Positions 6,241 to 50,786 are shown, counted from the stretch's first letter. The stretch is DNA of 64,000 nt from Magallana gigas (GCF_963853765.1 NC_088859.1:37820001-37884000), one strand, 5' to 3'. Notes: generated by a model from the sequence alone, not told the origin. Program-made: numbers and translations.

Positions 6241-7122
6241 TTAAAGAATGGCCCCTTGTTCCATCATCCCACTGAGCTCTTCATATTTTTTATGCAGGTA
6301 GAGACTTTCCTCTAAATTGTACACTCTTATAATATTTCTGTCACTTCCAGTAAAGTTATAAGACACAAACAATGTTTTTTCAAGTGGTTGAGTACAGATA
6401 TGGAAAGGAAGTTGTCCTTCGTCAGTTACCAAATTTCCAATGTCCATCCCATCTTTTGTAATAATGTGTATCTTGGCATATCCGATGCTAACTACAAACA
6501 GCAGATTGTCACATTCAGCAATTCCCCCGACGGACGCAGGCACGGGACACTCCCAAATCACCTCACCCGTAAAAGACACGCTCAGAAGTTTGGTTCCTTT
6601 ATCATAGTCTCTGTCTGAGATGTAGAAACGGTCAAGATCCGAGTCTAATAGCAGCGTAAAGCCAGGAGTTATGGTTCTGTTTGCGATAGTTTTCAAGTCA
6701 ATCGCTTGCATCTTGTCACACGAAAGGTGGAAAATCTGAACTTGATGATCGGAACTCATGAGAACCCCGATGTATTTGCCATTTGAGTGAACTGCAAAAC
6801 CCGTGTGTTTTAATTGTACTTCTTCCTCTATCTTCGGAACAATGGTTCCATCTTCGTTGGTTTCTATGCCCCAATACTGGAGTTTTTTTCTCGCTATGGT
6901 GGCGAAAGATTTTTCAGACACCACTGTGACTCCCATGCAATCTCGAGACACATGAACTTTCCATTTAAACTCATATTTATTGTCAAACAGCTTCAACATG
7001 TTGTTTTCCACATCTGCCACAAGGGTACTAATCTCGTTTGTGAACGCTGACAACCCTGTGACTTTGCAATCCTTTTCCTCTGGTAGTTTCACCGAAACTT
7101 CCTTTAGCAGAACTGTGGACAT
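6241..7122 (-). CDS. Tandem paralogue (copy 2): beta-propeller-only ORF lacking the B-box
   Basis: 293-aa ORF collinear with copy 1 from MSTLLLKEV onward, with long identical blocks (LDSDLDRFYISDRDY, FTGEVIWECPVPASVGGIAECDNLLFVVSIGYAKIH). ATG context is atcaaaATG and there are no internal disablements. Confidence 0.7.
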   Translation of the reverse strand: MSTVLLKEVSVKLPEEKDCKVTGLSAFTNEISTLVADVENNMLKLFDNKYEFKWKVHVSRDCMGVTVVSEKSFATIARKKLQYWGIETNEDGTIVPKIEEEVQLKHTGFAVHSNGKYIGVLMSSDHQVQIFHLSCDKMQAIDLKTIANRTITPGFTLLLDSDLDRFYISDRDYDKGTKLLSVSFTGEVIWECPVPASVGGIAECDNLLFVVSIGYAKIHIITKDGMDIGNLVTDEGQLPFHICTQPLEKTLFVSYNFTGSDRNIIRVYNLEESLYLHKKYEELSGMMEQGAIL

Positions 7123-7352
7123 TTTGATGGCCCTCTTATTTGTCTGGCTATTTTTGACGTCGTTATCCTCTTTTGTGTTGTCTGTATTTCCTCTTTCGTT
7201 GTAATTCCTGCTTCACATAGCTCCAAAAATATTGCAGACCTAACTGTCCTTTATCTTTTTAGACTAAGCATCGCCAGTAAGTATACAGCAGTCGTTAAAT
7301 GAGGAACGTATCCAACAACTTTCACAATCGTGCATATAATATAGGTAAACAT
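7123..7352 (-). pseudogene. Decayed B-box/linker segment of copy 2
   Basis: Aligns to the copy 1 5' CDS. It has the ancestral ATG at 7352, a 1-nt deletion after codon 5, a ~18-nt deletion in the B-box, GAT GCT TGT changed to GAT GCT TAG, and further stops and frameshift before ATG 7122. Confidence 0.8.
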
Positions 7353-7363
7353 TATGAAGGATA

Positions 7364-18500: not shown

Positions 18501-21500
18501 TAAAGATGATCAAATGACTTTGGTAAGAATGGATTTAAGGAATACTAATCAACAAATTAACAACAATTATTCACTGATAATACACATATGCTGTAATGTT
18601 CTTGTTTGACACTATTTTTCTTTTGACTATATAAGGATGCTGGTCAGAAGAAGTTTGGAGCCACGCAGTGTGATACCTGTGGAATGATTTACTCCCAAGC
18701 AGAACCTACTGATGAAACCACTCATGCAAAATTCCACCAGAGCATCCTGAATGCCCTCAAATTTCCTGTCAGTGAATATTCAATGGGTTTATCTTTTGCA
18801 TGTCCATCCATTAGAAACTTATTTATATTGTTCTGCCAAAAAAATTTTAATGTCAAATATTGAAAGTTAATCAAAATTATGAAACCTGGTTATTGGTTCC
18901 ATATTATAATAAGTGCATTAAGAAATTGTTGTGATATAATGATGTTAATTTTTCTTAAAAAGTTAAAGATTGTGTTTTTGTGTTAAATATCATTTTCCAC
19001 CCTTTTAGATAAAGTTCTACTTTCAATTTATCCTAACAGGGTTGGAAGAAAGAGAGAGTGGTACAGGAGTTTGATGACGGTAGTCGGATCATCATGGTGA
19101 CTTATGAAGATCCCAAATACGCTCACAAAAAGGTAAAGCAAAGGTGACAAGTTATTTAACATCATCCTTGATCAATATTACTAGATCAACTACAAACCAT
19201 GTAACGATTATATCTTACCAACTGCCTTTGTATAAATGGCAAATAATGAAAAATAACAATTAATAGTTATGCTTTATAAGATAATTTGGGTAAAAAAAAC
19301 ATGACGTCATAACACTGTAAGAAGTCTTAATGCTCAAAGGGAGTATTACTAAAACCGATTTGGTTTGACTTTAACGATCGCGTCGCGTTCAACTCTTTCA
19401 GCTACGTCATACATAAACAATACCCGCACCTTAACCACAATTTTTTTATTGGTGGATTCAGTTTACCGCTGATTGGCTGCTGGTTAACTAAGACTAAATT
19501 ATGCACGGACAGAACAACAACATATCTGAGAATGAAAAATTCACATGGGTACTCGTGACTGTCGAAATTGGGCTATTTTTCGAAAGTGTACACTTGTGAT
19601 AAAACAATACATACGGTACATAACATATATAGCTGTAGCTCTATGTATAAATTTTGGGTTAGAAAATATAAAGCTACAGTGCATACAATACTTACATGTA
19701 CAAAAAAACTTTACGGCAATTTGCCGCATATAAAAATAACGCTATTTTTGAAAAAAATAATAATTCTTCATTTAGTTTACTACTGTTAATAATTGTATTT
19801 TACTTGCCCCAAACTTTCTCCTATTAAACAACCTTCTTCCGTACTCGGAAGGCGGATCAAGAACTGTATTTTTTATGTATGTAAACAAACCATTGTTCAT
19901 GTATGGAGCTGGTGATCGGCGGCTCAGAGACATGTAAAATAAGGAAATCTGCAGTAAATGGTTTGTGGATATTTTAGTATATATATATTACACCGAAAGT
20001 GATAGGGCAACAGAAGAGAAACGAATCGGACACTTGTCTAATGAAGATGCACATGTACAAACCCCCTTGCACTCTCCACTTCCGTCTCGTTCTTTCACAC
20101 CATCGTTCAATTCTTTTATTGACTGTCGATTGCCGATCGAAAGGTGTAGAAATCGAGGAATTCATATCTATCACTTGGACTGGCAAGTTAGTAGGTAATA
20201 CATGTGCATATTACACATTTACGGTATTTACATGAATTGAACGCTTAGCACATGCAACTTCTAAATATTATATTTTTTATAACGCCGTACTCTGGACCGT
20301 AGCTTGAGTTGAGGCTATGGTTTAACGCCCGTTTACAGAGAGAGAGAGAGTTTTGCACAGAATTTAAACATAGGGGATAGTCGATTTTGAATGAATAATA
20401 TTGGGGGGAAATGAACTGTTCTGAGAAATCCTTCAGCTCTGGCATTGCATAAGCATGTACTGATAACTCCGCCTAACTCAACCAATCATAAAGTTTTCAC
20501 AACGGCGGCGTGTATAATTTATGCATGACGTAGCTGACAGAAATGATCGTGACGCTATAGGAAAAGTCAAACCAAATCGGTTTTGATAATAATATTTTGT
20601 ACTGACTATACATAGTCTCAACATGACTGCTGTAAGCCAATAATTTTCTTAGAATTCAGCAGGAGGTAAGATATATAGGACTGTCCATTGCTAAAGCAAT
20701 TCAGAAGTACATGCATCTTAGGCTGTATAATTTTATTAGATTTATAAAGGCAATCGCTAAACGTTCCCAAAAAAGCAAATGAAAACAATAATTGAATGAT
20801 TGGAGATTATTTTTAAAAGAGTATTTGACACTTTTTCCTTTCAGATTATTTTTACAAATTTTTCCTATGAATTTTATTAGGTTGAAGAGATCAATAAAAT
20901 TATGGGAGCTGAGCTTGGATTTCCAGAGAGCACTTTAATTTTCAGAACGGATTATAAGGTAACTGAAAGAAGAAGAAAAAATATTACTTTTAGACCCTTT
21001 AAATTGATATATTTGTTCTTTGTTACATTATTAAATTTTTGTAGGTTTTTCTAATGATTTCTGATGAGAAGAAGATTATTGGATGCTGTATTGCCGAGAA
21101 TATTACACAGGTAAATAAACATGGTATTTGTGATTTAAAAAAAAAACACCAAAGTTTGCAATGTTGGTTTTTTCCATGTTTCCATGTTCCTTCACAATTA
21201 TAGGAATTGCTTGTTTGCCTGTTCACACTAGCAGTCTTTTATACATGTACTGTCATTTAAAGCTAAACTGAAATGCATGGGTAGTAAAGGTAGCAAATTT
21301 TCTATGCAAATGTTCTATGGACACCATTTATTATTTTGAATACAGTTTAGGTATCAACAAAAACTGACAAAATCTGAATGGTTATTTAGTAAAGATAGTT
21401 TCTCCTCTGATGTTGTTACTTTATAAACTAATATTCAAGTTTTAGAAAAAATAAATGTTTTTTTAAATGAATTCTGATAGTGAAGGAAAATCCTTTGTGT

Positions 21501-23061
21501 ATTTTAGGGTCATCGAGTGATTGCAGATTCACAGTCCAGTCAAGAGTCTGGTTCCAGGCCCTGGTACTGTGACTCGGAACCAGAACCAGCTTCTGTAGGA
21601 ATCAGCAAAATCTGGGTTCATAAGCTGCACAGGAGAACCGGAGTAGCCTGCAAACTACTGGACTGTGTTAGGTCAGTGTTGTGTGACATCTTAGAATGTT
21701 CGTATAGTCATGGTCTTACACCATTGAAATCTAGTTTTTCAATATTATACAATTATTGTCTAGATATAAGGGGGAAGGAAGGCTGAGAGCAGCATTTTTG
21801 TCTGAATGTCCAACAAACGATATTGCCCAAATCCCAGTCAATAACTGTTTTGTTATACTTTTCACTACATATACGAGCATAAATTTGTTTCAAGGGGCAT
21901 GGTCACGATTTTGGTCAAATTTCATTTTTCTGCTTTTATTATTTACAATGCTTTAGGAATGCATTTCTAATGATCAAATGAAATTTGGGTGACAGTCGAT
22001 GAGCTTTAAGCAGGATACAGGGCTCACAATTCTTCGTTACGTAAACAAGGCTCGTGCCCTGTTTTTGTTTACATAGGTTCAATATACCAGTAAAAATCTT
22101 TTCAAGCTGATTTTTCTATCTTCTTATTCATTTTAAGCATAAATAAACAGTTCCTAACGATTAACACATTTATTTGAGGTCTAAAACTGGTATTTTCACT
22201 TCACCATTCAAAATGTAAACAAACGCTTTGTTTACATAGCGAAGAATTGTAAGCTCTGTAACTCACTTATAACTCAACAAATGACACTAAAATTTTGGTT
22301 TCCTATTAAAAATGCCTTACTAAAGCATTGTAAACATTAAAATCGAAAGAAAAAAATTTGACCAAAATCGTGACCATGCCCCTTTAAGAGTATGGCAATT
22401 TCCATTTAGCCAACTTTTAATGAATATTATTTAATTCAACACCTAATTTGTTAGAGCGACTGAATAAAATTAGTTTTAAACATTTTTGGGTGAAATTTAG
22501 AAATGGATATTTTATAAGGACATAACAAAAGATTTTGATGCAGATATTAAAGTTATCAGATAATTTTTGTAATATTCTTATTGTTAAGGTTGAGAGAATA
22601 TTATATTTTCTGAATCTGAGAACATGGTAATTTTTGTAGCATTATGGTATAATATTTACATTTGCAAATACATTTCCTTATATGAACCTATAGAATAGCG
22701 AAAACGTTCAATTCTGTATGAACTTTTTTTGTGACGTCACAATGTACACAGCACGCGCTTATCGCTTGGATTAATGCAAACATAAAATCTCGGTAATTAT
22801 ATCAGTTCTGATCGATTTGTCTTTTTCAAATGTAAATATAAGTAATAAACAGCAATTAACAGGATATTTTTTTTTTTTTTTGATGAAATGTTTATTAATA
22901 AGCCAACTGCTTCTACATACATCACGTACATACATCACAAATTTTCAAGGACACAAAGTATGTTTAGGAAAGCAACGAAAACAATTACATCAATAATGCA
23001 TATATAATGAACGTTTACTAAGAGAGAAAAAACAAAATACATATTGAGCACCTTTTTTATT

Positions 23062-23093
<32 letters not shown>

Positions 23094-26000
23094 GGGGGAG
23101 AGAGAGAGAGAGAGCACTCTAGAGTGAGTTAATCACAGGGGTCCAAATTTCCCAGTCTGTATTGAACTTATCCATTTCACTTCTTTCTTTTGCACAGAAT
23201 TGGAATACTTTATATAACTGTTTTAAATCATTCATAAGGGCATTTACTGTTAATTGGTTTTTCTGGCATCTACTTCTGTATATGTATTTTTTTATCAATA
23301 TGAGTACAATATTGAACGCTTTTGACTTCACATCATCTAAGACACCAAAAATAAAAGTTTTATTATCAAGGACTATTCTAATTCCTTTAGAGTTGCAAAC
23401 TCTAACAAATTCTGCTAATAAATGTTGTACCCTTGGACATTCCCATAATAAGTGATATATTGTTTCCTCAGCATCTTCACAAAAGATACATAGATTAGTA
23501 TCCACTTTACCAATTTTATACATAAAACTGTTTGTAGTTAATATATAATGGTTTATTCTGTACTGCAACCATTGAAATTTAGAGTCTGAGGTAATAATAA
23601 AAGGTAAATGAAATATTGAAACCCATTGTTTTTCTGTAAAAACCAAATGTCTACTCCATTTTTCTTTTCCCACTGGTGTTACATTTGTCTGATTTAATAT
23701 ATCATACATTGGCTTTGAACCTTTTTTTTGTTAATACAAAGGTTTTAATATTAAATGGTATAAAAGGTTTGAAAACTTCATTTCTAATGAAGTTGTATTT
23801 CCTTAGATCTGAAAGTACAGCTTGTCTTACTCCCATATATGTTAAATAATTCATTTGAATATTAAATTTTCTTTTCAACATTTCAAAATCTAAAAAGTTT
23901 TCATTTTCATCAAACAAGTCAATTACACATCTTACCCCTTTAGCATACCATGATTTATAAAAAAAAGACTGATTTCCTATCTTAAATTTATTATTGTTCC
24001 ACAATGGCTGGCAACAATAATCCTGCCATGATTTTTCATTTAAGTTATCTTGGATTTCTTTAAAAGCTATGGTAACTTCCTTCCAAAAATCATTTTTTAA
24101 CGATTCTTGCATTTGCATAATTTAATCTGAACCTGTATTTAATAGCTTTTCTAAATTAATAGAATTCTCCAGCAGTGTTTTCCATTTTGAATTATTATCC
24201 TTAATTAATCTCCTAATCCAAGTAGACTTTAATCCTTTAATATAGGAATTTATATCAACCATCCTTAACCCACCATGTTCATACTTCTGAGTACATACTT
24301 GTCTTTTAATTTTATCACATTTTGAATTCCAAATAAAATTGAATAGAATATTGTTTAATTCTTTTAATGTTTTACTCTGAGGGTTTGGTAAGGCTATAAA
24401 TAAGTGGTTTAATTGTGAAATTAAAAGAGACTTAACCAGTGTTATCCTTCCAGTTGGAGTCAAGTGTCGTTTGCTCCATTGTTCTATTACAGATTTTATC
24501 CTAACAAGTTTCTTGTCATAATTAAGTTTTACAATTTTATCTAAATCTACATCATAATATATGCCCAAAAGTTTGAATTGAGTTGTCCATTGAAAATTCA
24601 TTTCTGAACAGATTTTTTCTTCAGAATATTTTTTACTTCCTATCCACACAATCTGAGTTTTTTCTTGGTTTATTTTAAGACCAGATAATTTATAATAGTC
24701 ATCTATTTCTTTCATGGTTGCCCTTAATGATTTCTCAGTTCCATCAAGGATTATTGATGTATCATCTGCATATTGTGATATTAAATATTGGGTGTTATTA
24801 ATTTTGATTCCTGTAATATCTTCATTATTTTTTATTTTAATTGACAATATTTCCGCACATAATAAAAAAATGTAAGGCGATATTGGATCACCTTGTCTGC
24901 AGCCTCGTCCAAGTTTAAAAAAGTTTGATAAAATGCCTGCCTGGGACACACAGGACATAACATTACATTGAAAAGTTTTAATCCAGTTACAGATAAATGG
25001 GCCAAAATTAAAATAATTGAGTGTATTTTGTATAAATTCCCAAGCAACAGAATCAAATGCTTTCTCAAAATCAATCATAACTAATACCCCTGGAATATAA
25101 TTATTTTCTGTATAGTTCATCAGATCATAAATCAATCTAATATTTTCCCCTATATATCTTCCAGAGATGAAGCCAGTTTGGTCATTACTGATAATTTTAT
25201 TTAGAACAGTTTTTATCCTGCTTGCTATACAACCTGACCCAATTTTGTATATAACATTGAGCAATGAGATAGGTCTCCAGTTACCAAGGGAGAATTTACT
25301 CTTTCCCTCCTTGGGTATACAAGTTATAATTCCTTGTTTCTGAGTAGATGATAATTCTCCTACTTTATATCCATAATTTAAAGATCTAACAACAAAGGAG
25401 CCTATTTTATTCCAAAACATTTTTAAAAATTCAACTGTGAACCCATCACTGCCTGGACTTTTATTGTTTGACATACTATTTAAAACCGAAGAAGCTTCCT
25501 TATATGTTATATATCCTTCAATTGATTTTCTTTCATTGTCAGATAATTTAGGGACAGAATAATCTTTTAGAATGTCACTTAGTGAAATATCTGTACTTTC
25601 TGTTATCATCAAATTATTTGCATACAAGTTTTTATAAAAAATTTCCAGTTCATTTAAAATCTCCTCTTGTTTAACTATTTCTATCTGTTCATTATTTTCT
25701 GTTATTATTATCTTTGGAATAATTTTACTAGTATAGTGATGATTTTCTAAATTTAGAAAATAATTAGTTGGTTTTTCTCCCTCATTTATCCATTTAGAGC
25801 GTGAACACACCAAACTACCCATGACCTTATAGTTTCTTATATTTTCTAATTCTTTTTTCTTTTCATTTATTTTATCTATATATTTTTCATATTCCTTTTC
25901 CAATTCTAAAAGCTCTTCTAGTAACCCCTTTTCCTTTTCTGTCCTTTGCTTTTTTAAATAGCTTGCATATGAGATAGTTTTTGATCTAATTTCCATCAAC

Positions 26001-27662
26001 AGTGTCTCCAGAAAAAGTTGGTCGTTAATTGTAAATTGGATTTCAGAATCTGGAATATCTAGAATAGACTCTGGAACTGCATATTGGATTTTAATTTGAT
26101 TAATATGACAGTTAATACTTTGCACCTACTCTAAATCTTTTAAAAGGGAGTTGTTAAATTTCCAAAGGCCACTACCATGTTTAAAATCATTAAACTTTAA
26201 AGAGATAAAAACAGGAGAATGATCTGATCTATAGCTTATCATGATATCACTATTTCTAACTTCTTTTATAAGTGAAGCTGAAATAAGAAAAAAGTCTAGA
26301 CGTGCTTGTTCAGAGGTGTAGGTTTTCTCCAAGTATACCTCTTGTCATATGGATGAAATTCTCTATATATATCTACTAAACTGTAAGACATCATATGCTC
26401 TAAGACCGTTTCCCATTTCCCTCGCTTTCGGATTATTAACATGTAAGTTATTATAATAATCTTGACTTGTATCTAATACCAAATTAAAATCTCCAACAGT
26501 ACTGTAGATTCCTTATTTTACGCGAGTACTTAATTCCGCGATTCAACGATTTACCATCAAATCGCGAGAACATAAAATCGCGAATGCCGAAATTTTATCT
26601 TACTTTCATGTTGTTTACCTGTTTCCCAAAATTAAAAGCGAGATTTTAAAATTTGCGAGACGGACTTCTCGCGATTTTACGCGGATATTAATTCCTCGCG
26701 TTTAATTAGGAATTTACAGTAATCATCTCATCGTTTTGTAATTTGTTAACAATATTGCTCAAATTCTGGTAAAATTCTGGAGAATCCTCATTAGGTCCAT
26801 ACAAACATACTAAGCTTAACTTTCTATTCTCTATTGAGATACTAAGTGCCAATAAATTCCCTGTATTCTCTTCTTTGATTTGCTCATGTATTTTGAAATC
26901 AAAATTGTTATTAAAGAGAATAGCAACTCCTCTCGATTTCGAAGAAAAGGAATTAAAACAAGCCTCATAACCCCATTCGTTTCTAATATCTTGTTCCATC
27001 TCCTCAGTAAAATGTGTGTCTACTAAACATAGGATATTACATTTTTGTTGTCTATAGAATTGAAAAATATCTTTTCTTTTCTTAACATCATTTAATCCTT
27101 GAAATTGTAAATGGGATTTATGAATTTACTTTATAACTTTATTTTATACAATATTTCTTGATTTTAATACCTACAATTAAGAAATAAACAGTAATTTAAA
27201 AAGTTCACCGGAATATGAAGTTAGTTGGTACGTGATCAAATCTATTGAGAAGCCCTTCAGGCTTCACAGGATTTGATCACGTGACCAACCAACTTCATAT
27301 TCCGGTGAACTTTTTAAATTACTGTTTATTTCTTAATTGTAGGTATTAAAATCAAGAAATTTTGTATAAAATAAAGTTATAAAGTAGATTCATAAATCCC
27401 ATTTACAATTTTAAGAAAAACATCACTTTATCTATTGTATGATGTACTGCTCAACTGTTAGTCAACGTTTGCTGGTCTTTGTGTAGTAAATTAGTAATAC
27501 AATTTAGTTACAAATTTAATTGTTGATTGCAGGCAACACTTTCATTATGGAACATTTATTCCAAAAAAACGAATAGCATTCTCGGATCCAACACCAGATG
27601 GGAAGAAGTTGGCCACAAAATACACAGGAACCAGTTCATTCTTAGTGTACAAGTTTGGTTAG
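15599..27662 (+). CDS. ESCO2: N-acetyltransferase ESCO (Eco1/ESCO1/ESCO2 family; establishment of sister-chromatid cohesion), ~688 aa
   Basis: Exons 15599-15666, 16414-16740, 16938-17885, 18462-18522, 18636-18767, 19040-19132, 20881-20958, 21045-21110, 21508-21671, 27533-27662 (2067 nt, in frame, all GT/AG). Motifs: PIP-box-like QMTLDAGQKKFG, zinc finger CDTCGMIY...H...H, GNAT core GISKIWV...RRTGVACKLLD, C-terminal IAFSDPTPDGK. The N-terminus is S/T/P/K-rich. Exon 1 is the least certain, and ESCO1 vs ESCO2 orthology cannot be resolved by eye. Confidence 0.92.
17972..18372. repeat. Intronic tandem duplications: 2 x 161 bp followed by 2 x ~45 bp
   Basis: 17972-18132 is near-identical to 18133-18293. 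ttaaagtttaatgcagttataaactacatttatggcagaaaaa then occurs twice. Confidence 0.85.
19344..20591. mobile_element. ~1.25-kb non-autonomous DNA transposon with ~85-bp imperfect TIRs in ESCO intron 6
   Basis: Left TATTACTAAAACCGATTTGGTTTGACTTT...TCAGCTACGTCATACATAAA; right reverse complement TATTATCAAAACCGATTTGGTTTGACTTT...TCAGCTACGTCATGCATAAA. No transposase ORF, and the TSD is unresolved. Confidence 0.75.
21893..22383. mobile_element. 491-bp MITE with 30-bp perfect TIRs and TTAA-type target site (Kolobok-like)
   Basis: TIR AGGGGCATGGTCACGATTTTGGTCAAATTT at both ends, flanked by TTCA (left) and TTAA (right). Purine-purine termini with a TTAA target fit Kolobok rather than piggyBac. Confidence 0.85.
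22653..22857. repeat. Left portion of a dispersed hairpin-ended repeat (homologous to 43969-44174), cut by the LINE tail
   Basis: Shared blocks tttacatttgcaaata, tagcgaaa(a/g)cgttcaattctgt(a/g)tgaactttt, gacgtcaca, ttttcaaatgtaaata(t/c)aagtaataaacagcaat. Confidence 0.7.
22867..27101 (-). mobile_element. Decayed non-LTR retrotransposon (L1/Tx1-type ORF2: APE endonuclease, RT, C-terminal Cys/His domain), antisense in the last ESCO intron; no ORF1
   Basis: EN motifs QGLND, CLVDTH, GDFN, RLDFF, SDH. RT motifs KSPGSDGF, WRPISLLNV, GCRQGDPISP, QYADD. C-terminal CIFC...ETIYHLLWEC. A15 tail at 22867-22881 with AATAAA at 22891-22896 and a GA-rich tract after the stop. Disablements: TAG at 26126-26128, TAA at 24122-24124, an A8 frameshift near 23725, EN frameshifts and a MITE insertion. 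Confidence 0.93.
26502..26719. mobile_element. 218-bp Tc1/mariner-type MITE nested in the LINE endonuclease
   Basis: TIRs CTGTAGATTCCTTATTTTACGCGAG / CTGTAAATTCCTAATTAAACGCGAG, with TA at 26500-26501 and 26720-26721. Removing the element plus one TA restores the LINE reading EMITVGDFN. Confidence 0.9.
27098..27415. repeat. ~320-bp near-perfect palindrome (arms ~140 bp, loop ~27 nt) at the LINE 5' junction
   Basis: Left arm aattgtaaatgggattt...ggtacgtgatcaaatc is the reverse complement of gatttgatcacgtgacc...aaatcccatttacaatt with few mismatches. The core is shared with 44160-44315. Confidence 0.92.
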
Positions 27663-28226: not shown

Positions 28227-28507
28227 AAAAGCAGGAACGACAATGAAGATGTATTTAACCCCAGTAACAGCGTTTTGAGGGTTTTGGTCACCATGAACGG
28301 TTTAGTTTGAATGAGATGTTTGCTGCCATCGTCGTTTCGCACAGTAATAAGTAAACCCAAGTTGGACATGGCTGCCCATTGCTCTACCTTGTTACAATAC
28401 AAATTCAGCACTCTGCTTTCTAAGTCAGGCTTCGTGGCCGCCAGTCCAGCCAAACAATGAGCGCCACTTCCTCCTCCACAAGTTAAAACCACAACTCTTT
28501 CAGCCAT
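28227..28507 (-). pseudogene. 5' fragment of an opine dehydrogenase gene (Rossmann-fold part only)
   Basis: MAERVVVLTCGGGSGAHCLAGLAA...QTKPFMVTK, then a 1-nt deletion near 28282. The shifted frame gives (D)PQNAVTGVKYIFIVVPAF and homology then stops. It has the same cag|tgATG acceptor/start arrangement as the gene at 45425-46648. Confidence 0.9.
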
Positions 28508-28724
28508 CACTGAGCGTTACGTAGAAATCTATTCCTCAAGTATGATTAATATGAACACTTCCTGAGGTAAACATAATCACAATGTAAAAATTGGTTATTT
28601 AGAGTTATAATCGACGACGCAAATTTGTTATTGATACCCAATGGCATGACTTTTTAGATTCACGTTTTATTGAATATTTAGGTATGTAATTCAAAAATAC
28701 CACAAAAAAGTAAATTTTGTTCTG

Positions 28725-29800
28725 TTTTTAGCTCACCTGAACCGAATGTTCAAGTGAGCTTATCTGATCACATGTTGTCAGTCGTCCGTCCTTCTACCTG
28801 TCCGTCTGTCTGTAAATTACATTTTTGACTTCTTCTCTGGAACCACCTGACAAAATTTAACTTTATTAAGTACAAAGCAGCTTCATGGAAAGGGGGTTCT
28901 AAATTCTAAAAAAAAAATTAATGAAGGCCGAAACCCTTTTTTAAAAGGGAGATAATTGCGAAACAGTTAACATAGGGTGCATGTCTTTAAAAATCTTCTC
29001 AAGAGCCACTACACCATAAATGTCAATATTTACATTTAAGCTTGCACCTGTAATCAATATTTAAAATTCTTTAAATAGTGGCCCCCGGATTAAAATTGGG
29101 GCCCCAAGAGGGTTCAAATACTAGTATTAACATAAAAATAAGTAGTGAAAATGTCTAAAAATCTTCTTCTCAATAACTACAATGCTACAGTTTGTGAGAT
29201 TACTATGCAAGCATCCTTAAATAATGTAGATTCTAAATTTTTTAAACCGTGACCCCTGACAAATACTGGGGTCCTAAGACGGGTTCAAAGTTTGAAAATA
29301 TGAAGGGATACTATTAAAAAATCTTCTTTTCAAGACCCACATTGCTACAATTCGTGAGATTACAATGCAAGCATCCCTATAAAATTTAGATTATAAATTG
29401 TTAAAATAGTGACCCCAGGACTAATACTGGGGTCCAAAGAGGGGACTAATACTGGGGTCCAAAGAGGGATTCAAAGTATAACATAGAAATATATAGGGAA
29501 ATGTTTTAAAATCTTCTCAAGAGCTGCAATGCTAAAGTTTGTGAAATAACAACGCAAGCATCCTCAAATAAAGAAGATTCTAATTTGTTACAATCGTGAT
29601 CGCTGCACTAATACTGGGGCACACGAAGGGAGCTCAAAGGTTTGAAAAAGAGATGTATAGGGGTGATATATAAAAATCGTCTCAAGAACCACCCTGCTAC
29701 AATTTATGAGATTACAATGCAGGCATTCTCAAATAATGTAGATCATAAATTGTTGAAATTGTGACCCCCGGATTAATATATTTGGCCCTAAAAGTGTTTA
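28725..29800 (+). mobile_element. HINE / CvA-pearl-type element carrying ~5 tandem ~160-190-bp satellite-like monomers; 3' end not found
   Basis: 5' ttttagctcacctgaaccgaatgttcaagtgagctt (self-complementary), then a gtcc/gtct tetranucleotide tract, then monomers anchored at atc(t/g)tc at 28993, 29161, 29321, 29511 and 29676. Confidence 0.7.
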
Positions 29801-31439
29801 AAACGTTTTAAGCTATCGTGTTTTCTTTTATAATTTCTATCTATAAATCACCGAGCACTGTGCATTTTATTTAGAATCTCATTTTGCTGCAAAAACCTGT
29901 TATATAATTACAATTCTTCAAAAAACTCATCATTTATGATAAATTTATATAAGACTAAATCATTAAATTTTATTATAAGGAAGATTTCTCTACTAAGGAA
30001 TAAAAAGTATATTGCAAAACATTTTCGTAGAAGACAACAATTATTTTGTACCTTTATTTCAATATGACTAAAAATGTATAAACCATTTTTAATGTCATTT
30101 TACAATTGCATTGCGCTTTTAATTGCATATTACAAGGACATGGAAATTGCAGCTCATATTGCTTTGAGTTTTAAAGTATGAAGTGTTAACAGCATAGTGG
30201 CTGTTTGGTAGAAGCAAGGTGATTTGTTCCATGAACCCCGTTATTCGGGACCAATTGAGCGATGACAGTCACATTATAAAGTATGTCACTGGCTTGTCTT
30301 AATAAATGTACAATGTGTACGTCAACACTTCAGTCTGTTGAACAATTCACTATTGTATTTGGGTTTGTTTTTTTTACCAGTATTTGGTACTTCCTTTTTA
30401 AAACATTCGATCGGAGGGAGACTGTATAATTCTATATTCCGTTCTTCACAAAAAATTGAAAGATTAAAATGATTTGAAACACTCCTCTTTCCACGGTTGA
30501 CTATTTACTGAAATTCACAGAAATAACAAATTAGTAAAATTATTCATTAGACTGAAATATGATTGTTTTGTTATTTTTTTTTCTTGTAAGTAATGTATAT
30601 ACATGTATGTATTGACTTCACTACCACAAGGAAAGTACAAGTATGCCAGTTTGATTAACTGTATACATGTACAGGCACGGTCCCTTGGTTTTCTCTGTAT
30701 TCATCTTGTGTATATACTGTGGCATACCAAACTTCTTTCTATACTGATACATCTTGAGTATTGCATTGTATTCGATGTAATTTTGTACATTTTCATTCCA
30801 CGAGACTGTTTACGACAATTGTAAAAATAAAAGACATTTTTCAGTATGTATTTTAAAAATAATTGATATAGTGTTTAAAATCATGCATGCCTTTAGAGGG
30901 ACATACAAGCATGTTGATGAATGTACAATAATCATACAAAACATAGGAAAATTTTAATATCACATCTATGATTCTCAGACCGCAATGAAATTAAGTACGA
31001 CTTTTCAATGATGTTGCATGATATCCTCCTCGGTCTCGAGATGTTGTTTAACTGAAGTTAAACTTAAGAGATTCGATTTTTACCAATAAGGATATCTATA
31101 TTTACATTGGGATAATATTGTTTAGTAAGGCAAGCATTTTGGAAAGTTGTAACTTTTTTACTTGTGGCATCGCTTGTATTTCAATAGGCCATTTTTTTCC
31201 GGAGGAAGATCAGGTCAAACGTATTTCCTTTCCCTCAGGATACAAATATTTATAGCAACTACCTCCATTTCAAAATAGAATATGTTTATCTGAAAAAAAA
31301 AACCCAAAAGAAGATAATACCACAAGATTTGAAAATACTTTCAAAATTAGATGAAATTATTTAACTAAAATAAAAATTAACTTGACAAGATTTTACTTAG
31401 ACTGCTTAAATAACTAGTAAATGAATCTCGTGGCATGAA

Positions 31440-32006
31440 AACATGAAACACGCGCGCAAACAAAAGCTATTTGGCGGGAAATCATAATATCTACAATACT
31501 AGTATTAGATTGTCTCTATCGCCGTCAACAACTCAAATTATAGTATGTAAAAGCATTTCATATTTGCTGGAGACGTGTAGGTCTTCATGTATATGTGAAA
31601 ATCTTTGATAACGCATAATTCATCAAAGATACCCTGATAGTATGGGAAGCCAAAGGGTTCAACATTTTATCGATATAATTGTGCTTTTGTCGAATGTGTT
31701 TTCTAAATGCCTTATTCAATGAATGTATATATAGAAGAGTTCAATGTTAACTCTGTTTTTTGGTTCTCGGACATTGTGAATAACCATTTTCAAATCATCA
31801 TTTGTAAGATTTATCAAATTTTAGAAAAATATTGACTCATAATTCTGAAATGTGATTGTGTCATTCGTAATTTGTATTGTAAGATTTGTAAAGTAATGCA
31901 CATATGTACCATTATGACGACAGACGTCGAATATTATGTGAAAGGGCTATTAGAACCCTAGGTATCCTACGATAACTTATACCTTATAGATCATATTGTG
32001 TGTGTG

Positions 32007-32048
<42 letters not shown>

Positions 32049-32900
32049 ATGTGTATGCTTACTTAATGATATCTCGCGCAAGCGCAGGAAATGAATAGAG
32101 CATGGCCAGGAATGCAAATCTTTACTAAAATTGATAACATTATAATATGAGGTCTAAATTCTTTTTTGTTGCATCTGGCTGGAAAATTACAAACTTTTTC
32201 GGCATGTGACTGATGACTGTTTGTTCCGTATGTAATTTATTTTTTGCAATTGAAATTACTCTCAATTCTTGCATTATCTATTATCTGTTAAATGTCAACC
32301 CTAAATCTCACACATACATGCCCAGTGACTTTTATTTTAAAACGGGGAGGGAGATGTAGTGAGTCGTATCTCTTTTCTAAATTTTATTCTGAAAATCAAA
32401 CTATTAAAAAAAATAGAGGAGGAGGATTACACCACCACCTCCTAAAGGAACGTCCCCGTTTTATGCGTATATATTGAACTCGCCCTACATTATCCACAAA
32501 GTCGTTAATTAGTCAACCAGCGTTCTTACTTACCCCGTTCTGGATAGTTCTTTCCATCAGAACTAAAATCGCCCATTCAAGTAACGAATTGGCTCATTTT
32601 AATTTTTCCAAAATTTGTCAAGTCTTAATTTCTATGATTACTCTAATTAAATTGTCGCTAATCATATTCACTCTTTACATATTATTCAATTTTATTTCAT
32701 TGCCAGTATATATTTTGATACAAACTCCCACTGACATGATAAGCCAAAGCGTGTCTATCACTGCTATTTCGGCCTAGTTTATCGAAAATGAAAGTAGGTT
32801 TTTAATTAATTTCACATTAATGACTTATCAGGTATAATTCAATTATAGTTTACGGACATCATCTCACACTTGTTGAAATATTAAAGGTGTTAGTAGTTAC
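31440..32900. repeat. Non-coding duplicated block, copy A (paralogous to 35110-37490)
   Basis: Collinear shared blocks, e.g. aacaaaagctatttggcgggaaat, ttagtcaaccagc...taccccgttc, gatacaaactcccactgacatgata, gacttatcaggtataattcaattatagtttacggaca. Confidence 0.8.
31997..32048. repeat. Microsatellite (TG)5(TATC)10
   Basis: Directly visible. Confidence 0.9.
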
Positions 32901-33893
32901 TTCTGAGATTGCATTTTGTAGATTTTGGAAAAATTTCATCATTTATAAGTAAAAAAACCTCAGCACATATTGGCAATTTTTCATGTGTCATTATTAAGAC
33001 AAGCCTGATTGAATTATATTTTTAAAAGAATGTCTTGCGTGGATCTGTCATGCGCATATCTTGATTTTAGGGTGGGTGGGAATAAGGGGGTTCTTGTCCC
33101 TCCAGAATTATATACATGTACTTATGAATTTTATAAAGTAAAGTGACAGAAAATAGACCTTGGATTTCCCAACCTCTGTTTCTCAGACCCTACCCATTAA
33201 AAAAAAAGAAATTATTGACCCGTGTATGTTGAAATTAATATTTTGAGTATCTCAGGATGACAGTTTGTTTATTGGGCAACTTTAATTTGCGAAAAATCTA
33301 ATATGAGAATAATTGAAACTTCACAATGTAAATATCATTAGCCCATAGCTACACGATGAGTCAGGTTTCATCCGAGTGATAGAAGCAATTCAAAGTCGTA
33401 ATATATGATATGTTTCCAAAGTGTCTGCGACGTTTAATTGGGGCGTCATAGTTAATATGCTTTATTCTTGTGAGATATTGTGGAATTCGACCTTGATAAT
33501 TCAAAGTTTATAATTCGTTCTAAATATGTCAAAGGGGTCACTTTAAAGAGAATATCGTCGTTATTTTATTGCCAATTTTCAGCCAATTTTATTTAACACT
33601 ACAATTATGGGAATATATCGCGACACGAGGCGGTATTACATTTGTGTAAATAAGCCCTCAGCAAATTCAGACAAGGAAAGTAAATTAAAACAAATACACA
33701 GTCATGAGATGTAGGTCAAGCCGATCTGTCCTGTATACGACATGCACATAATCATTTTTGCTCAATGTTGCTTTTGTGTTCGGTTATCGTTGTTAGTACA
33801 GAGGATAGTTTTATGGCATAGAAGACATTTGTGATTTATGCATGTGTAAACCCAGCTAGTAAATGTAACTGATATTTCCATTGAAAATACAAA

Positions 33894-34763
33894 ATGATGA
33901 ATATATCTCTACGTGCTACCGACAACATAAATGATAATGCGAGCACAAGTATCCAGAAAGGATTTGGAAATGATTCAACTCCAGAAGGATTTATTTTGCA
34001 ACTCACGTATAGAGAAACGACTTTCGAAATAACATTCACTTGTGTGATTTTAACTATTGCGTTCTTTGGGTGCATTGGGAACCTTGCCACAATAGGTAAA
34101 ATCGTATACGATCCGAAATACCACAAACCGACATTTGCTGTTATCGGGCAGTTGGCTTTGGCAGATTTTCTTTCAGTCACAGTTTTAACTTTTGACAATA
34201 TGACAAACTTTTCGAAGTTTTTGCCAGAATTTACAGTCTTCAGGGATATTTTTCAATTAAGTTCATTTTTTCACGTGTGTTTACTTTCCGCTGTAAGATA
34301 TTTGATCACCGTTCATCCCCTACAAAGCAGACAACATCTAACTGTAAAGTCGATGTGTTTGTGTTCACTCACAATATGGATTTCAAGCGGTGTTGTCATA
34401 ATTGGTTTAATATATACTGCCGAGGCAGTACCTAAGATATATGTGTTGACGATTTATCTCATCTTCAATGTTTTAATATTGTTAATAGTCTGTTCTGTAG
34501 TGGCCCTATTGCATGTTAAAAAGATAAGAACATTACAGAATTCTTTGTCTGTAACAGAACAATCACAAAGAAGAATGAATATTGTTGTCACTGTGATCAT
34601 TAGTATATTTGTATTATATCAATTGTTTATTGTTGCAGGAAAAATAATATTTACCTTTTCAGATCAATTAATTGGCTATTACTTAATGTATGGATTTGTT
34701 ATCATTGGAAGTTTAAACTTTTCTTGCAACCCGTACATATTATTTCTTTCTCAAATCATATAA
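33894..34763 (+). CDS. Intronless class A (rhodopsin-like) GPCR, orphan, 289 aa
   Basis: Seven hydrophobic segments: TM1 GCIGN, TM2 QLALADF, TM3 SAVRYLITVHP (DRY equivalent), TM4 IWISS, TM7 NFSCNPYILF. N-terminal sequons NIS, NAS, NDS. Confidence 0.85.
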   Translation: MMNISLRATDNINDNASTSIQKGFGNDSTPEGFILQLTYRETTFEITFTCVILTIAFFGCIGNLATIGKIVYDPKYHKPTFAVIGQLALADFLSVTVLTFDNMTNFSKFLPEFTVFRDIFQLSSFFHVCLLSAVRYLITVHPLQSRQHLTVKSMCLCSLTIWISSGVVIIGLIYTAEAVPKIYVLTIYLIFNVLILLIVCSVVALLHVKKIRTLQNSLSVTEQSQRRMNIVVTVIISIFVLYQLFIVAGKIIFTFSDQLIGYYLMYGFVIIGSLNFSCNPYILFLSQII

Positions 34764-35109
34764 GGTGTTGCATGCGTTTAACGATTTGATATTGTATACA
34801 TTAATGAATATCCAATTTACTATATCCATGGTCATGTACCCTATTATATGTTGTTATTATTCTTGAATCGCAGCTCATGTATATAGTCATGTTGAAAATA
34901 AACTCAACATAAGAAACTCAATCCAATAAAATACTCATCCTTGCCTTTTTGGGCTTTTTTTGTATAGTAAGAATAAAACGTAATATGCTAGCTATCACCA
35001 TTTTACTGATTTGAATCATGCAACTTTTGTTAGTTTACTAGTAGATGAATCTTATAGCACAAAAATACATGCCGCAGTTTGCACGAGGAAGGGGGAGGGG
35101 CACATCCAA

Positions 35110-46648: not shown

Positions 46649-48688
46649 CACTGTAATTTAAAAAAATATATATACATTTTTTTTTACTGAATGTAATCTG
46701 ATAAATGAATTATGTTAAAAATATTCTACTGTAGAAGTTATGCATACCACACAATTTATGTGTTAATCTGACTTATGTTTCCTGTTTACACACAAAGATT
46801 TGTTGGGAGATTTTTTTATAACACTGCATATTTGTTCTGCCTGCTCAGCGTTGTCATGTACACACGTAGTGACTGGAGTAGACAGACTGATATTATCTCT
46901 CAGGTCCTGGGGTTCATGGCCCTCAAATGTCCAGACGATTAAAGGATCGAATAACATGTAGCTATATACATGTACATGTGCGGCGAACTGAACTTTCAAT
47001 TAAGATAATTAGTTAACATTCCAGCCATCAAACCAAAGCTAATGTAATAAGTGGTGTATATATCTATGAGCCTTTTATATATGATTTTTAATTACCACTA
47101 CACGAACAGATATCTGAATTATCGCTTAAACCAAAAAAAAAACAACAACAAAAAAACAACGTGTGTTTAAATGCCGGACACTAAGCACGTATATCCCACA
47201 CACACACACACGGAAGACCTTGAGCATCCATGTCGAGTATTGATTGGCGTCCGCTCCAAGGTCAGGCTGAATGAAAGTACATGTACCTGTGTAATTGCAT
47301 ATTTATAACAAAAACACATGCAAAAAATACTACAATATTTATATAAGTTGGATTTTCCCCCTGAACTATGTCACACCCAAAACTGCGTCGTTTAAATACT
47401 CGAACACCCTATATTTAGATAACCTGCCTGTTACGCAAGCAGAACCATGTACTGAGATTCGATGCAAGTATAATATTTAAGGTACCTGATTTCAGCAATA
47501 CACTCTCGGACTCAGTGGTAAAGGAATTTCTTTTGAGGACAAGTCTATAGCAGCCGGAGCACAGCACAAACAGAACCGGCGCTAGGTAATAAATCTCGAC
47601 ATCAATGGATCATCTGCTTTGCAAATAGAGTTACCGCTCTTTGTTATTTTGTCCTAAAATCTGCGACGGCAGACGTAATATTTCCGTCAAGTTGACTTGA
47701 CGAAAGTGATGTTGGGATTGCTGCGACGGGAGGAATAATATTCATGATATAATGTCAAATCTTTATTATTTGCTTAGACTTTGTTTTTATGTACTTAAAC
47801 TTCATTCATATAAACTAATATGAATGAAAAGTAGTTTTGTAAAATATACATTTATCTTTACATTAAGACAAAATTTTGGCATCAATATCATATCAGCCAA
47901 AAAAGTATTCATTTTCATTTAATGGTACCAAGTGATTTTTTTCTGATAAAACACAGATATCGATAAATAAACTGAGAAAAAAGCAATCAATAGAGAGAAA
48001 TGCATGCGCCTGTAAATCTACTACAAATCTTTGTGTAAAAAATTCCTTTTTCAGCATGCACTAATTTACTCACCCCGTCGGAAATCGAGGACCAGTTTTG
48101 AATCGTCGAAAACCCACGGTCAGTCTTGTATGCTTATTGATGGTCAGTTAGCGTATGCGAGACTGGCCAAATTTTAATTTAGGAAAAAAACATAGTTACA
48201 AGACTTTAATATAGTTAAACAATTAGAAGTTGCAAACCAGTTTTATTTACAAATGATAGGCAATTGTTGAAATGGTTATTATTAATTGAAGCTTAATCAA
48301 TGAACACCGATTTTAATTTATCTAATTATACTTACTTGGGCCCAAATCTGACTCTGAAAATTCAAAAGCATGCAGGCACATTTAATCTTCTTCGTATCAG
48401 AACTAGTTACTGATAACCTGTCATGATAATGTTTGACTAATACATGAAGCCTAATAGTAAATGTCCTCTTTTATTATGAAATAAAATTATAGTTGTTTGA
48501 AAATAATTTTACATTTATTTAAATAGAAATACAAGTACATATCTAACTGCACAACAAAATCGACGTGGTAATAAAAGACTAGATAAATGATCATGTTAAA
48601 CTTAAAAGCCTCAGTAATAAGCATTTTCATAAGCAATGTCGTTATGGCTCTAACATACAAATACTGATTTGCATGCTTTGTAGTCTAC

Positions 48689-49903
48689 TTAAACATCAAA
48701 TAGCTGCTGTACGCTCTTAAATCCGAATCTCTGTGGTGCCCTGGTCTTTGACACGTCCTTTCCCGAGAGCTGCGAGCCCATCATGTATTCTTGTTGAAGC
48801 TTGCCTTGAGCCCACGTTATGATCTCGTCCATCACAGGAGTCGCTACCCCAGCCAGTTCCCCGATTCCCTTCATTACGACTAAACCGAACGGTACGTCTT
48901 CTGCCGTGTATCTGTAGCTAAAGTCTGGCACAAACTGGCCATTTTCCACTTCCTTCATTGGATGAAGTAAGCCGTCGTATGCCTTGTTTGTCTGCATGGC
49001 CGTCATCAAATTTGTCTTGTCTGTAATCTGGTCCGCGTAGTAGGCGAGGTACCAGTCAAATATATGGATGACCTCTGACATGTCTATTCCCGGAATCTGC
49101 TTCTCTATTGCTTTCCCGATGGCAATGCATTCGTCGCTTACCCCAGACAATAACTTTGCCTGCTTTTCGTCGACTCCTTGATAAAACAATGGTTTTTCTT
49201 TGAGCGGAGTTCCATCATATGACGACCATTTCCCGTACATTAGCGGCGGGTGAATGATAGACTTGGCCATCAGATTCACGGCGATGTAGTTCTGGATCTC
49301 CCTCAGGACGGGTTTTGGCCCCAAGACTTTCTGAACGGTATCAAAAGGAGACCCTTTAACATTTGATTGACTTCCTTGTAGTTTTGAAACTCCTAGAGTT
49401 TCTTTAAAGCCCAGAATTTGAACCAGACGACCAAATTCCAAAATTCTGCATGCCCAAGGTAGAGATTCAGCAGACATGACGATGCAAGTTTTTGCTTTTT
49501 CTCCAAGCATGTACAGGCATTGAAACTCAAACCCAGCCTGGCCCGGGAGACCAACTATTAACGTGTTGTCCCCGACAAAAGGCGAGATCTCTCTGAAGTA
49601 CTGTTCATGTGCAAACGCTGGGACTACTAGGAATATGACGTCAGCACCCGACGCGGCTTCTTTGGGATCCTTAGTTACCAATGTTGGTTTGGATTTAATT
49701 TCTCTAGAGGAGCCATCACTGTTGACCATAGTTACGATTAAATCATTGTCCTGGAGTATTTTGGACCAGCGTTCTGCTTCGTCAGCGAACAAAGTTAAAA
49801 CACGTGTTTCAACATCCGGGTTACTGGCCGATAATCCCGCCAAACAATGAGCTCCGTTTCCTCCTCCGCAAACTAAAACTTTCAGTTTGTTTTCTGTTCC
49901 CAT
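48689..49903 (-). CDS. Opine dehydrogenase ODH-4, 404 aa, most divergent member (likely the ancestral-type copy), intronless CDS
   Basis: KVLVCGGGNGAH, RVLTLFADEAERW, AESLPWACR, MAKSIIHPP, YRYTAEDVPFG. Acceptor ttttcctctag| lies 18 nt upstream of the ATG (exon starts at 49921). Confidence 0.95.
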   Translation of the reverse strand: MGTENKLKVLVCGGGNGAHCLAGLSASNPDVETRVLTLFADEAERWSKILQDNDLIVTMVNSDGSSREIKSKPTLVTKDPKEAASGADVIFLVVPAFAHEQYFREISPFVGDNTLIVGLPGQAGFEFQCLYMLGEKAKTCIVMSAESLPWACRILEFGRLVQILGFKETLGVSKLQGSQSNVKGSPFDTVQKVLGPKPVLREIQNYIAVNLMAKSIIHPPLMYGKWSSYDGTPLKEKPLFYQGVDEKQAKLLSGVSDECIAIGKAIEKQIPGIDMSEVIHIFDWYLAYYADQITDKTNLMTAMQTNKAYDGLLHPMKEVENGQFVPDFSYRYTAEDVPFGLVVMKGIGELAGVATPVMDEIITWAQGKLQQEYMMGSQLSGKDVSKTRAPQRFGFKSVQQLFDV

Positions 49904-49953: not shown

Positions 49954-50786
49954 TATGGTGGCATATCTCTGCCCCTTGTGTGCTAGTTATTTTTCTATTA
50001 ATTATGTCGACATGCAAGATAAAGATGTTGACATGCAAGATAGTTATGTCAACATGCAACATAACTATGTTGACATGCTAGAAAACTGCAATCAAATAAA
50101 AGTTATAAAAATTTCGAATATCGCCAACATGTGACATCCAAGATGCTAGATATGCTACCTATTGATGTTAACATGCAACTTATTTATGTTAACATACAAC
50201 TTCTTTATGTCGACATGCAACTTATTTATGTCGACATGCAACTTAGTTATGTAAACATGCAAGAAAAATATGTTGACATGCAACATATTTATGTCGACAT
50301 GCAACTTAGTTATGTTGACATATAACTTATAAGTTGCATGTCAACATATTTATCTTGCAGGTAAACATAACTAAGTTGCATGTCAACATACTTATCTTGC
50401 ATGTCAACATAAGTAAGTTGCATGTTGGCATAAATAAGTTGCATGTCGACATAAATAAGTTGCATGTCGACATAAATAAGTTGCATGTCGACATAAATAA
50501 GTTGCATGTTGACATAAATAAGTTGCATGTCAGCATATTTATCTAGCATGTTAACATAAATAAGTTCCATGTCGACATAAAAAGGTACCATCTAGCCTCT
50601 AGGCTGTTACAGGTGGGCGATATTTGAGATTTTGTATAATTCTTATCTGATTGCAATTTTCTTGCATGTCAACAGTTATTTTGCATGTTGACATAATTAT
50701 GTTGCATGTCAACATATTTATCTTGGATGTCGACATATTTGATAGGAAAATAACTTGCACACATGGGGCAGAGATATGCCACCATA
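49954..50786. mobile_element. 833-bp fold-back non-autonomous DNA transposon with internal 21-bp tandem repeats and 6-bp TSD (IS3EU-like termini)
   Basis: TIRs TATGGTGGCATATCTCTGCCCC(T/A)TGTGTGC(T/A)AGTTATTTT. TSD AATGGG at 49948-49953 and 50787-50792. Arrays of ATGCAACTTATTTATGTCGAC lie in opposite orientation either side of ~50325. TAT...ATA termini with a 6-bp TSD match the IS3EU description as recalled. Confidence 0.85.

Follow-up and report, generated by a model that had tools for sequence, protein, structure and literature searches.

Opine dehydrogenases (OpDHs) let shellfish run glycolysis without oxygen. Alanopine and strombine are said to have been first described from the Pacific oyster, by Fields and co-workers in 1980-81. 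To our knowledge, the genes behind these oyster activities have never been sorted out, and oysters are said to lack octopine dehydrogenase (OcDH) activity. Here we describe an array of four intact OpDH genes, ODH-1 to ODH-4, in a 64,000-nucleotide stretch of the Magallana (Crassostrea) gigas genome (NC_088859.1:37820001-37884000; hereafter the window, from whose first letter positions are counted). This is probably the main OpDH locus of the oyster, with two conserved genes (ODH-3 and ODH-4), two derived ones (ODH-1 and ODH-2) and a history of local expansion of an alanopine-dehydrogenase-like gene. Gene structure, family, catalytic residues, orthology, synteny, transcription and rates were determined directly, and from them we infer all substrates.

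One of the closest described systems is the OcDH of the scallop Pecten maximus, in which the amino acid is held by a helix-kink-helix through backbone contacts of Met206, Ser207 and Tyr208 (PMC2924402). The roles given below to His212-Asp329, Arg324 and Trp278 are likewise taken from earlier work (PMC2924402, PMC10787698). By analogy, each oyster gene would encode a two-domain NADH enzyme that condenses pyruvate and an amino acid into an opine, regenerating NAD+ during shell closure or exposure to air. The Rossmann domain would bind NADH, with Arg324 sensing the NADH pyrophosphate as in the Pecten enzyme (PMC2924402). The amino acid would then dock on the helix-kink-helix with which domain II begins, upon which the domains would close, a pyruvate Schiff base would form, and its reduction would be aided by a His212-Asp329 relay.

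Four intact opine dehydrogenase genes in one array

The four genes have one coding exon each and together span 11.55 kb (38351-49903), with the strand order -,+,-,- from ODH-1 to ODH-4 (Table 1). All four open reading frames (ORFs) match the Octopine_DH helical domain PF02317 with E values of 1e-28 to 2e-32 and scores of 100-113 bits, where the Pfam gathering cut-off is 30 bits. ODH-3 aligns over its whole length with P. maximus OcDH 3C7A (E 1e-133), and through this alignment residues were given Pecten numbers. Each of the four proteins carries the Rossmann NADH motif CGGGNGAHC, of the GxGxxG/A type, together with His212, Asp329, Arg324, Trp278, Glu142 and Cys148. ODH-1, ODH-2 and ODH-3 are 79-83% identical to one another in protein sequence, and ODH-4 is 61-65% identical to these three. 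From their membership of the marine-invertebrate OpDHs (EC 1.5.1.x), all four are predicted to catalyse the NADH-dependent condensation of pyruvate with an amino acid.

A fifth, truncated copy (the stub) retains only the start of the coding sequence (CDS). It has a 1-nt deletion, reads GGGSG in place of GGGNG, and lies approximately 570 bp from the 3' end of an ESCO-like acetyltransferase gene. It is nearest to ODH-2 (75% DNA identity), and its divergence is 25-29%. Outside the CDS borders the paralogues share no similarity, and their flanking DNA is unrelated. A first-pass annotation, made from the sequence alone, had described four paralogues of 404-408 residues on these strands within 11.5 kb, an intact NAD-binding motif (GGGNG) with catalytic His, Arg and Asp, ODH-4 as the most distant copy and a pseudogene in the array, and each of these descriptions proved accurate.

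Table 1 Features of the opine dehydrogenase array and its surroundings, with positions in the window.
Feature	Position	Strand	Remarks
ODH-1 CDS	38351..39568	-	405 aa, single coding exon; pocket MADSTVHPP (K208D, I210T)
ODH-2 CDS	41629..42855	+	408 aa; cleft changes G117S, Q118H, W146F, A147V, S209F, P214S
ODH-3 CDS	45425..46648	-	407 aa from ATG at 46648; ancestral pocket MAKSIVHPP
ODH-4 CDS	48689..49903	-	404 aa; pocket MAKSIIHPP
Truncated OpDH pseudogene (stub)	28227..28510	-	CDS nt 1-282 only (aa 1-94), frameshifted
ODH-3 5' untranslated region (5'UTR) intron	46654..47485	-	GT-AG ends; four spliced contigs, at least 3 runs
ESCO-like acetyltransferase, last coding exon	27515..27658	+	Other exons ~20884-21692; synteny anchor
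Foldback element in ODH-4 5'UTR, resembling a miniature inverted-repeat transposable element (MITE)	49954..50786		833 bp, 50 nt upstream of ATG

Probable origin of the array by local expansion

At the syntenic site, Ostrea edulis and Saccostrea echinata have two genes in tandem on one strand, an ODH-4-type gene and then an ODH-3-type gene. In both species the tandem is followed, tail to tail, by an ESCO-like acetyltransferase gene, and the matching exons are found in the M. gigas window at ~20884-27658(+). An independent assembly of C. angulata has the same four genes as M. gigas in the same order and orientation, and in these two oysters the ODH-3-type gene is now present as three copies plus the stub. 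C. virginica holds a pair of its own, A1 and A2. Taken together, these arrangements support an ancestral oyster locus of one S-type gene (strombine-dehydrogenase-like, ODH-4 here) and one A-type gene (alanopine-dehydrogenase-like), the latter of which would have multiplied locally in the Magallana lineage.

Gene trees agree with the synteny. An oyster S clade holds ODH-4, its C. virginica and Saccostrea counterparts and the O. edulis strombine dehydrogenase, and an oyster A clade holds ODH-1, ODH-2 and ODH-3 with the A genes of other oysters; both have 100/100 support. The two clades are sisters in the larger trees (90/87 and 92/82), and the smaller tree does not resolve this node. They are separated by 42 fixed differences, at most of which the S clade retains the outgroup state, and those beside catalytic residues include positions 150/151, 204, 211, 215 and 326. 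The local duplication proposed by the first-pass annotation is supported by the two-gene tandem of O. edulis and S. echinata and by the placement of ODH-1, ODH-2 and ODH-3 in the A clade and ODH-4 in the S clade.

We envisage that the A-type gene of the ancestral tandem was copied locally to give ODH-3, ODH-2, ODH-1 and the 5' stub, that one copy was inverted, and that gene conversion probably followed the duplication. The stub sits beside the 3' end of the ESCO-like gene, the place expected of the ancestral A gene, and its divergence fits an origin in the same duplication burst. An intronless CDS could also be taken as a sign of retroposition or gene transfer. This was rejected: ODH-3 has an intron in its 5'UTR, the Lottia OpDH gene has a coding intron at amino acid 66, and the Pecten OpDH gene has a small upstream coding exon.

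Transcription of the four genes

ODH-3 is spliced, with a non-coding exon 1 at ~47486-47635, a GT-AG intron at 47485-46654 and an exon 2 running from 46653 to ~45100, as seen in four contigs from at least three runs. The ATG at 46648 follows the splice acceptor by 5 nt, and a GTG start for this gene (ORF 45425-46651) is an artefact. ODH-4 is covered by contigs from five runs that share 5' ends at 50886 or 50980, two of which also share a 3' end at 48120. Its cluster at 90% identity in the transcript collections has 483 members, mostly contigs of 1.4-2.5 kb.

ODH-1 and ODH-2 are covered by contigs at 38052-39752 and 41665-43531, respectively, from two RNA-type runs of different studies, and those contigs give zero coverage of the 1.8 kb between the two genes (39773-41545). 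In a stranded poly(A) run there are few reads per gene, with first-mate strands that are opposite to each other and correspond to the sense strands of ODH-1 and ODH-2. Based on these contigs and sense reads, the spliced ODH-3 and the transcript-sized ODH-4 contigs, all four genes are transcribed. The possibility raised by the first-pass annotation that some copies are unexpressed therefore falls away, with RNA support for four of four genes.

The 833-bp stretch in the ODH-4 5'UTR at first looks like an intron. This candidate was rejected, as the stretch has no GT-AG ends. It ends in long terminal inverted repeats, is flanked on each side by a CCCATT duplication, and belongs to a dispersed repeat with at least 40 full-length relatives genome-wide. 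It was not seen in the transcript-like contigs of the five runs or at the orthologous site in C. angulata, and it is therefore not an intron but a young insertion that is probably polymorphic. The insertion could affect translation of this ODH-4 allele.

Two ODH-4 contigs (L013 and L014) run past 48120 and across ODH-3 exon 1 to ~47130. This extension could represent read-through from ODH-4 into ODH-3, or DNA of an individual that does not carry the insertion.

Rates of evolution and changes in the substrate pocket

The ratio of non-synonymous to synonymous substitution rates (dN/dS, or omega) is 0.135-0.143 among the paralogues and 0.03-0.06 among orthologues, indicating purifying selection overall. 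Against C. angulata, dN/dS rises from 0.06 for ODH-3 and 0.14 for ODH-4 to 0.32 for ODH-2 and 0.57 for ODH-1. At 319 sites where the A genes of four other oysters do not vary, ODH-3 has 16 changes, ODH-1 has 46 and ODH-2 has 49. At 106 columns with a conservation of at least 90% across 37 other mollusc OpDHs, there are no violations in ODH-3, one in ODH-4, three in ODH-1 and five in ODH-2. Overall, ODH-1 and ODH-2 evolve approximately three times faster than the conserved copies.

The five ODH-2 violations are G117S, Q118H, W146F, A147V and P214S, and the ODH-2 changes line the cleft, in loops and helix near Cys148, Arg149 and His212. Within the helix-kink-helix, almost every mollusc enzyme other than those for octopine has the motif MAKSI[VI]HPP, ODH-3 and ODH-4 among them, and in this array the motif is altered only in ODH-1 (MADSTVHPP) and ODH-2 (MAKFIVHPS). 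The Lys208Asp replacement in ODH-1 required two nucleotide changes, AAG to GAT. The independent duplicate A2 of C. virginica has the motif MAN--IHPP and has A147V in common with ODH-2. Among 13 A2 changes at sites otherwise invariant in the A clade, six coincide with sites changed in ODH-1 or ODH-2 where 2.6 are expected (p 0.026), although this is a post hoc and weak test.

The changes in ODH-1 and ODH-2 are concentrated in the substrate cleft, and the substrate preference or kinetics of these two copies are most likely altered. ODH-4 and ODH-3 would be the conserved, well-expressed enzymes for glycine and alanine, making strombine and alanopine, and ODH-2 and ODH-1 the fast-evolving derived copies, with ODH-1 possibly on its way to loss.

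Database names and putative substrates

Three of the four array genes can be tied to existing names. ODH-3 and the cDNA named 'alanopine dehydrogenase 1' (CAH18004, I7HP94) agree in 406 of 407 residues, and ODH-2 agrees with 'alanopine dehydrogenase 2' (CAI52505, B5D5P4) in 401 of 408 (98%). The O. edulis orthologue of ODH-4 has been deposited as 'strombine dehydrogenase' (CAH17651, B5D5P3); the two are 84% identical and fall in the same 90%-identity neighbourhood. The putative activities are thus those of EC 1.5.1.17 (alanopine dehydrogenase) for ODH-3 and ODH-2 and of EC 1.5.1.22 (strombine dehydrogenase) for ODH-4, and for ODH-1 that of OcDH (EC 1.5.1.11) was considered. ODH-1 bears solely the names 'opine dehydrogenase-like' or 'y4xO'. 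ODH-1 and ODH-4 are letter-identical to M. gigas records, and ODH-2 and ODH-3 are 98-99% identical to C. gigas RefSeq/GenBank proteins. Since the locus is annotated and two of its genes have been named, it is less novel than the first-pass annotation implied.

That annotation had also suggested that the cluster encodes separate alanopine and strombine isoenzymes or new opine specificities. The public names of ODH-2, ODH-3 and the ODH-4 orthologue agree with the first suggestion, although the labels could not be traced to assays. The pocket substitutions make new specificities of ODH-1 and ODH-2 plausible, and here too the differences in substrate are ones that we infer. As a putative strombine dehydrogenase, ODH-4 would prefer glycine over alanine. 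As a comparative criterion of our own rather than an established definition, we took MAKSI[VI]HPP with Gln118 and Trp146 to mark a pocket for small amino acids; ODH-3 fits it, and ODH-2 has MAKFIVHPS, His118 and Phe146. A population-genomics paper reports an outlier SNP (single-nucleotide polymorphism) upstream of a C. gigas 'opine dehydrogenase' transcript, which may or may not come from one of the present genes.

Evidence against this reading and alternative explanations

Several observations weigh against reading the locus as two conserved enzymes with two derived copies from a Magallana expansion. With respect to substrates, the alanopine and strombine labels are depositors' names, for which the basis in enzyme assays is untraceable in the open literature. 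A full-text search of that literature found no paper dealing with the OpDH cluster of the oyster, the kinetics behind the named cDNAs or intron status, and the names are therefore leads rather than proof of substrate. In addition, OpDH sequences group by taxon and not by substrate, and limpet enzymes that are 96% identical differ in substrate (PMC11084901). Orthology therefore does not fix specificity.

With respect to ODH-1, the high dN/dS against C. angulata comes from 16 differences that are non-synonymous and 8 that are synonymous. In the C. angulata orthologue (L007:19728-20938), which was not called as a gene in its assembly, codon 77 has lost 1 nt and there is a further 3-nt deletion; either the gene has truly become a pseudogene in this sister taxon or the assembly is wrong here. 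Raw-read coverage of the M. gigas gene is very low as well. In the runs sampled, raw-read depth on ODH-1 and ODH-2 was very low, at 18 and 2 reads in ~13 million each. ODH-1 may thus be a decaying, weakly expressed gene.

With respect to dating, mean synonymous divergence (dS) is 0.77-0.91 among ODH-1, ODH-2 and ODH-3 and above 2 between genera, which suggests a triplication within the Magallana lineage. This date is unsafe, however, given that dS declines along the genes, with 0.9-1.75 over the 5' third and 0.35-0.6 over the 3' third, a gradient that blurs the dating and probably reflects gene conversion among the copies. The protein tree gives no date either, showing the triplication as a polytomy, and monophyly of the A copies in M. 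gigas and C. angulata was not rejected by an approximately unbiased (AU) test (p 0.059). ODH-1 and ODH-2 pair in the protein tree with 95-99% support, and the dS values disagree with this pairing. We read the gradient and the conflict as a mosaic history, in which old duplicates appear to have been partly homogenised by gene conversion.

Two alternatives have to be weighed against a functional split between conserved and derived copies. It is possible, though in our view less likely than not, that the four genes are isozymes of dosage or expression, all making the same mix of alanopine and strombine and differing in regulation by tissue, stage or stress. The catalytic residues are indeed the same in all four. 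Because the flanking DNA is unrelated between copies, each has regulatory DNA of its own, and the 5' structures differ, ODH-3 having its 5'UTR intron and ODH-1 being colinear with the genome. The clusters at 90% identity in the transcript collections are also very unequal in size (483, 59, 20 and 8), although these counts are only a rough proxy of expression. Conversely, the changes in ODH-1 and ODH-2 do not fall at random: they hit near-invariant cleft residues and the amino-acid-binding helix-kink-helix, and by the post hoc count C. virginica A2 is altered at the same spots.

The second alternative, to which we give some credence well short of an even chance, is that ODH-1 and perhaps ODH-2 are redundant and drifting towards pseudogenes, with the pocket changes being noise under relaxed constraint. 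The raised dN/dS of both genes, the deletions in C. angulata ODH-1, the low read depth on both and the presence of one copy that is already dead, the stub, all point this way. Nevertheless, more than 400 codons have stayed open in both genes despite a dS of ~0.8-0.9 since duplication, with an omega of ~0.14. Both are transcribed from the sense strand, ODH-2 is intact in both species and known as cDNA, and a faulty assembly could account for the C. angulata frameshift. The best-supported view of ODH-2 is that of a constrained but pocket-altered derivative. ODH-1 is pocket-altered and weakly expressed, and may represent either a new specificity or a gene being lost.

A bolder extension of the functional split, in which the two young copies are new enzymes rather than spare alanopine dehydrogenases, seems unlikely to us. 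The charge reversal from Lys208 to Asp brings ODH-1 to the state of all named cephalopod OcDHs, and ODH-1 could therefore be a cryptic OpDH for basic amino acids, forming octopine or lysopine. ODH-2, changed at five near-invariant cleft residues that include Gln118His and Trp146Phe, could use another amino or 2-oxo acid, and the changes at the same spots in the independent C. virginica duplicate would make this a repeated neofunctionalisation. Finally, the proposal that the array was created in assembly, from collapsed or uncollapsed haplotigs, which the first-pass annotation had allowed for, is effectively refuted by copies that are 17-39% apart in protein and have no common flanking DNA, by the independently assembled C. 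angulata genome, where order and orientation are the same, and by distinct cDNAs for two of the copies.

A distant paralogue and other features of the window

A fifth intact OpDH paralogue, ODH-5 (G000:C7:29795376-29796581; L005:1480-2706, minus strand), encodes 408 amino acids and lies approximately 8 Mb from the window. It is 38% identical, has the Rossmann motif GGDNNT, contains Arg in place of His212, and has neither Arg324 nor Arg149. The same losses are seen in its C. virginica, Saccostrea and Ostrea orthologues, which are 77-87% identical and carry the automatic name 'octopine dehydrogenase-like', and in relatives from Pinctada and Mytilus. These sequences form a clade of 13 with 100/100 support, outside all canonical mollusc OpDHs. 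The C. gigas ODH-5 cluster at 90% identity has 339 members, which are transcript-sized contigs. ODH-5 looks like a conserved, expressed pseudoenzyme derived from an OpDH and stripped of catalytic residues, and it may bear on the reported lack of OcDH activity in oysters. With it, the M. gigas OpDH family is mapped genome-wide as four active-looking genes, one stub and one paralogue that lacks catalytic residues.

The 10 kb that separate the stub from ODH-1 contain a single-exon ORF of 289 amino acids at 33894-34763(+), with a full rhodopsin-type seven-transmembrane domain (PF00001, E 2e-13). The Lottia OpDH gene also adjoins a 7tm_1 gene, which is probably a coincidence. On either side of this receptor-like ORF, the segments 32096-32951 and 36130-37537 are 77-82% identical to each other and are probably repeat elements. 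An intron of the ESCO-like gene holds reverse-transcriptase ORFs resembling those of long interspersed nuclear elements (LINEs) at 23119-26125(-), with RVT_1 (E 3e-36) and zf-RVT matches. Near the start of the window, the ORFs 3245-4369(-) and 6241-7122(-) lie in a tandem duplicated block (3294-4380 and 6299-7363, 86% DNA identity). The former has a weak B-box zinc-finger match, and the pair may be TRIM-like.

Comparison with known opine dehydrogenases

The locus is for the most part an ordinary case of tandem expansion within one lineage, in an enzyme family that is well known. Its genes are already annotated and some of them have names, and the locus leaves the understanding of the family unchanged. 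The pocket-residue hypothesis for two of its copies is readily testable, and residues 208, 117/118, 146/147 and 209-214 offer cheap mutagenesis targets for opine specificity. Such work would be of use for the hypoxia and emersion physiology of a major aquaculture species, and for opine dehydrogenases as biocatalysts of reductive amination.

ODH-3 is approximately 55-60% identical to Pecten maximus OcDH (3C7A, 3C7C, 3C7D, 3IQD) and has the same two-domain plan, with GGGNGA, His212-Asp329, Arg324, Trp278, Glu142 and Cys148 common to both. The pocket helix differs, reading MSYSFVHPA in Pecten where ODH-3 and ODH-4 have MAKSI[VI]HPP. Arginine is the specific amino-acid substrate of the scallop enzyme, and the oyster genes fall in oyster-specific clades. 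Closer to home, the C. gigas alanopine dehydrogenase 1 and 2 cDNAs are the same genes as ODH-3 and ODH-2, deposited as database entries without genomic context. The O. edulis 'strombine dehydrogenase' resembles ODH-4 in belonging to the same 100/100 clade and in being the first gene of its tandem, although it comes from another genus and a two-gene locus, and its substrate label is putative.

ODH-1 shares Asp208 with the cephalopod OcDHs of Sepia officinalis (Q9BHK4), Loligo vulgaris (Q9BHU3) and Doryteuthis opalescens (Q9GNX6), in the contexts LMADSTVHPP and LLAD[SA]VVHPP, respectively. This position is Lys in alanopine, strombine and tauropine enzymes and Tyr in Pecten OcDH. However, Asp208 is the sole residue in common: ODH-1 has neither GLPSQPGFQ nor DWYKL, and it derives from an alanopine-type gene. 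In family history, the array resembles the multi-copy OpDH families of other molluscs, such as the five CfOpDH genes of Chlamys farreri and the tauropine and beta-alanopine dehydrogenases of the limpet Cellana grata, at 96% identity. These too are duplicates specific to their lineages, some of them chromosomally adjacent, and phylogeny does not predict their substrates (PMC11084901). The oyster array is an independent expansion with pocket substitutions of its own.

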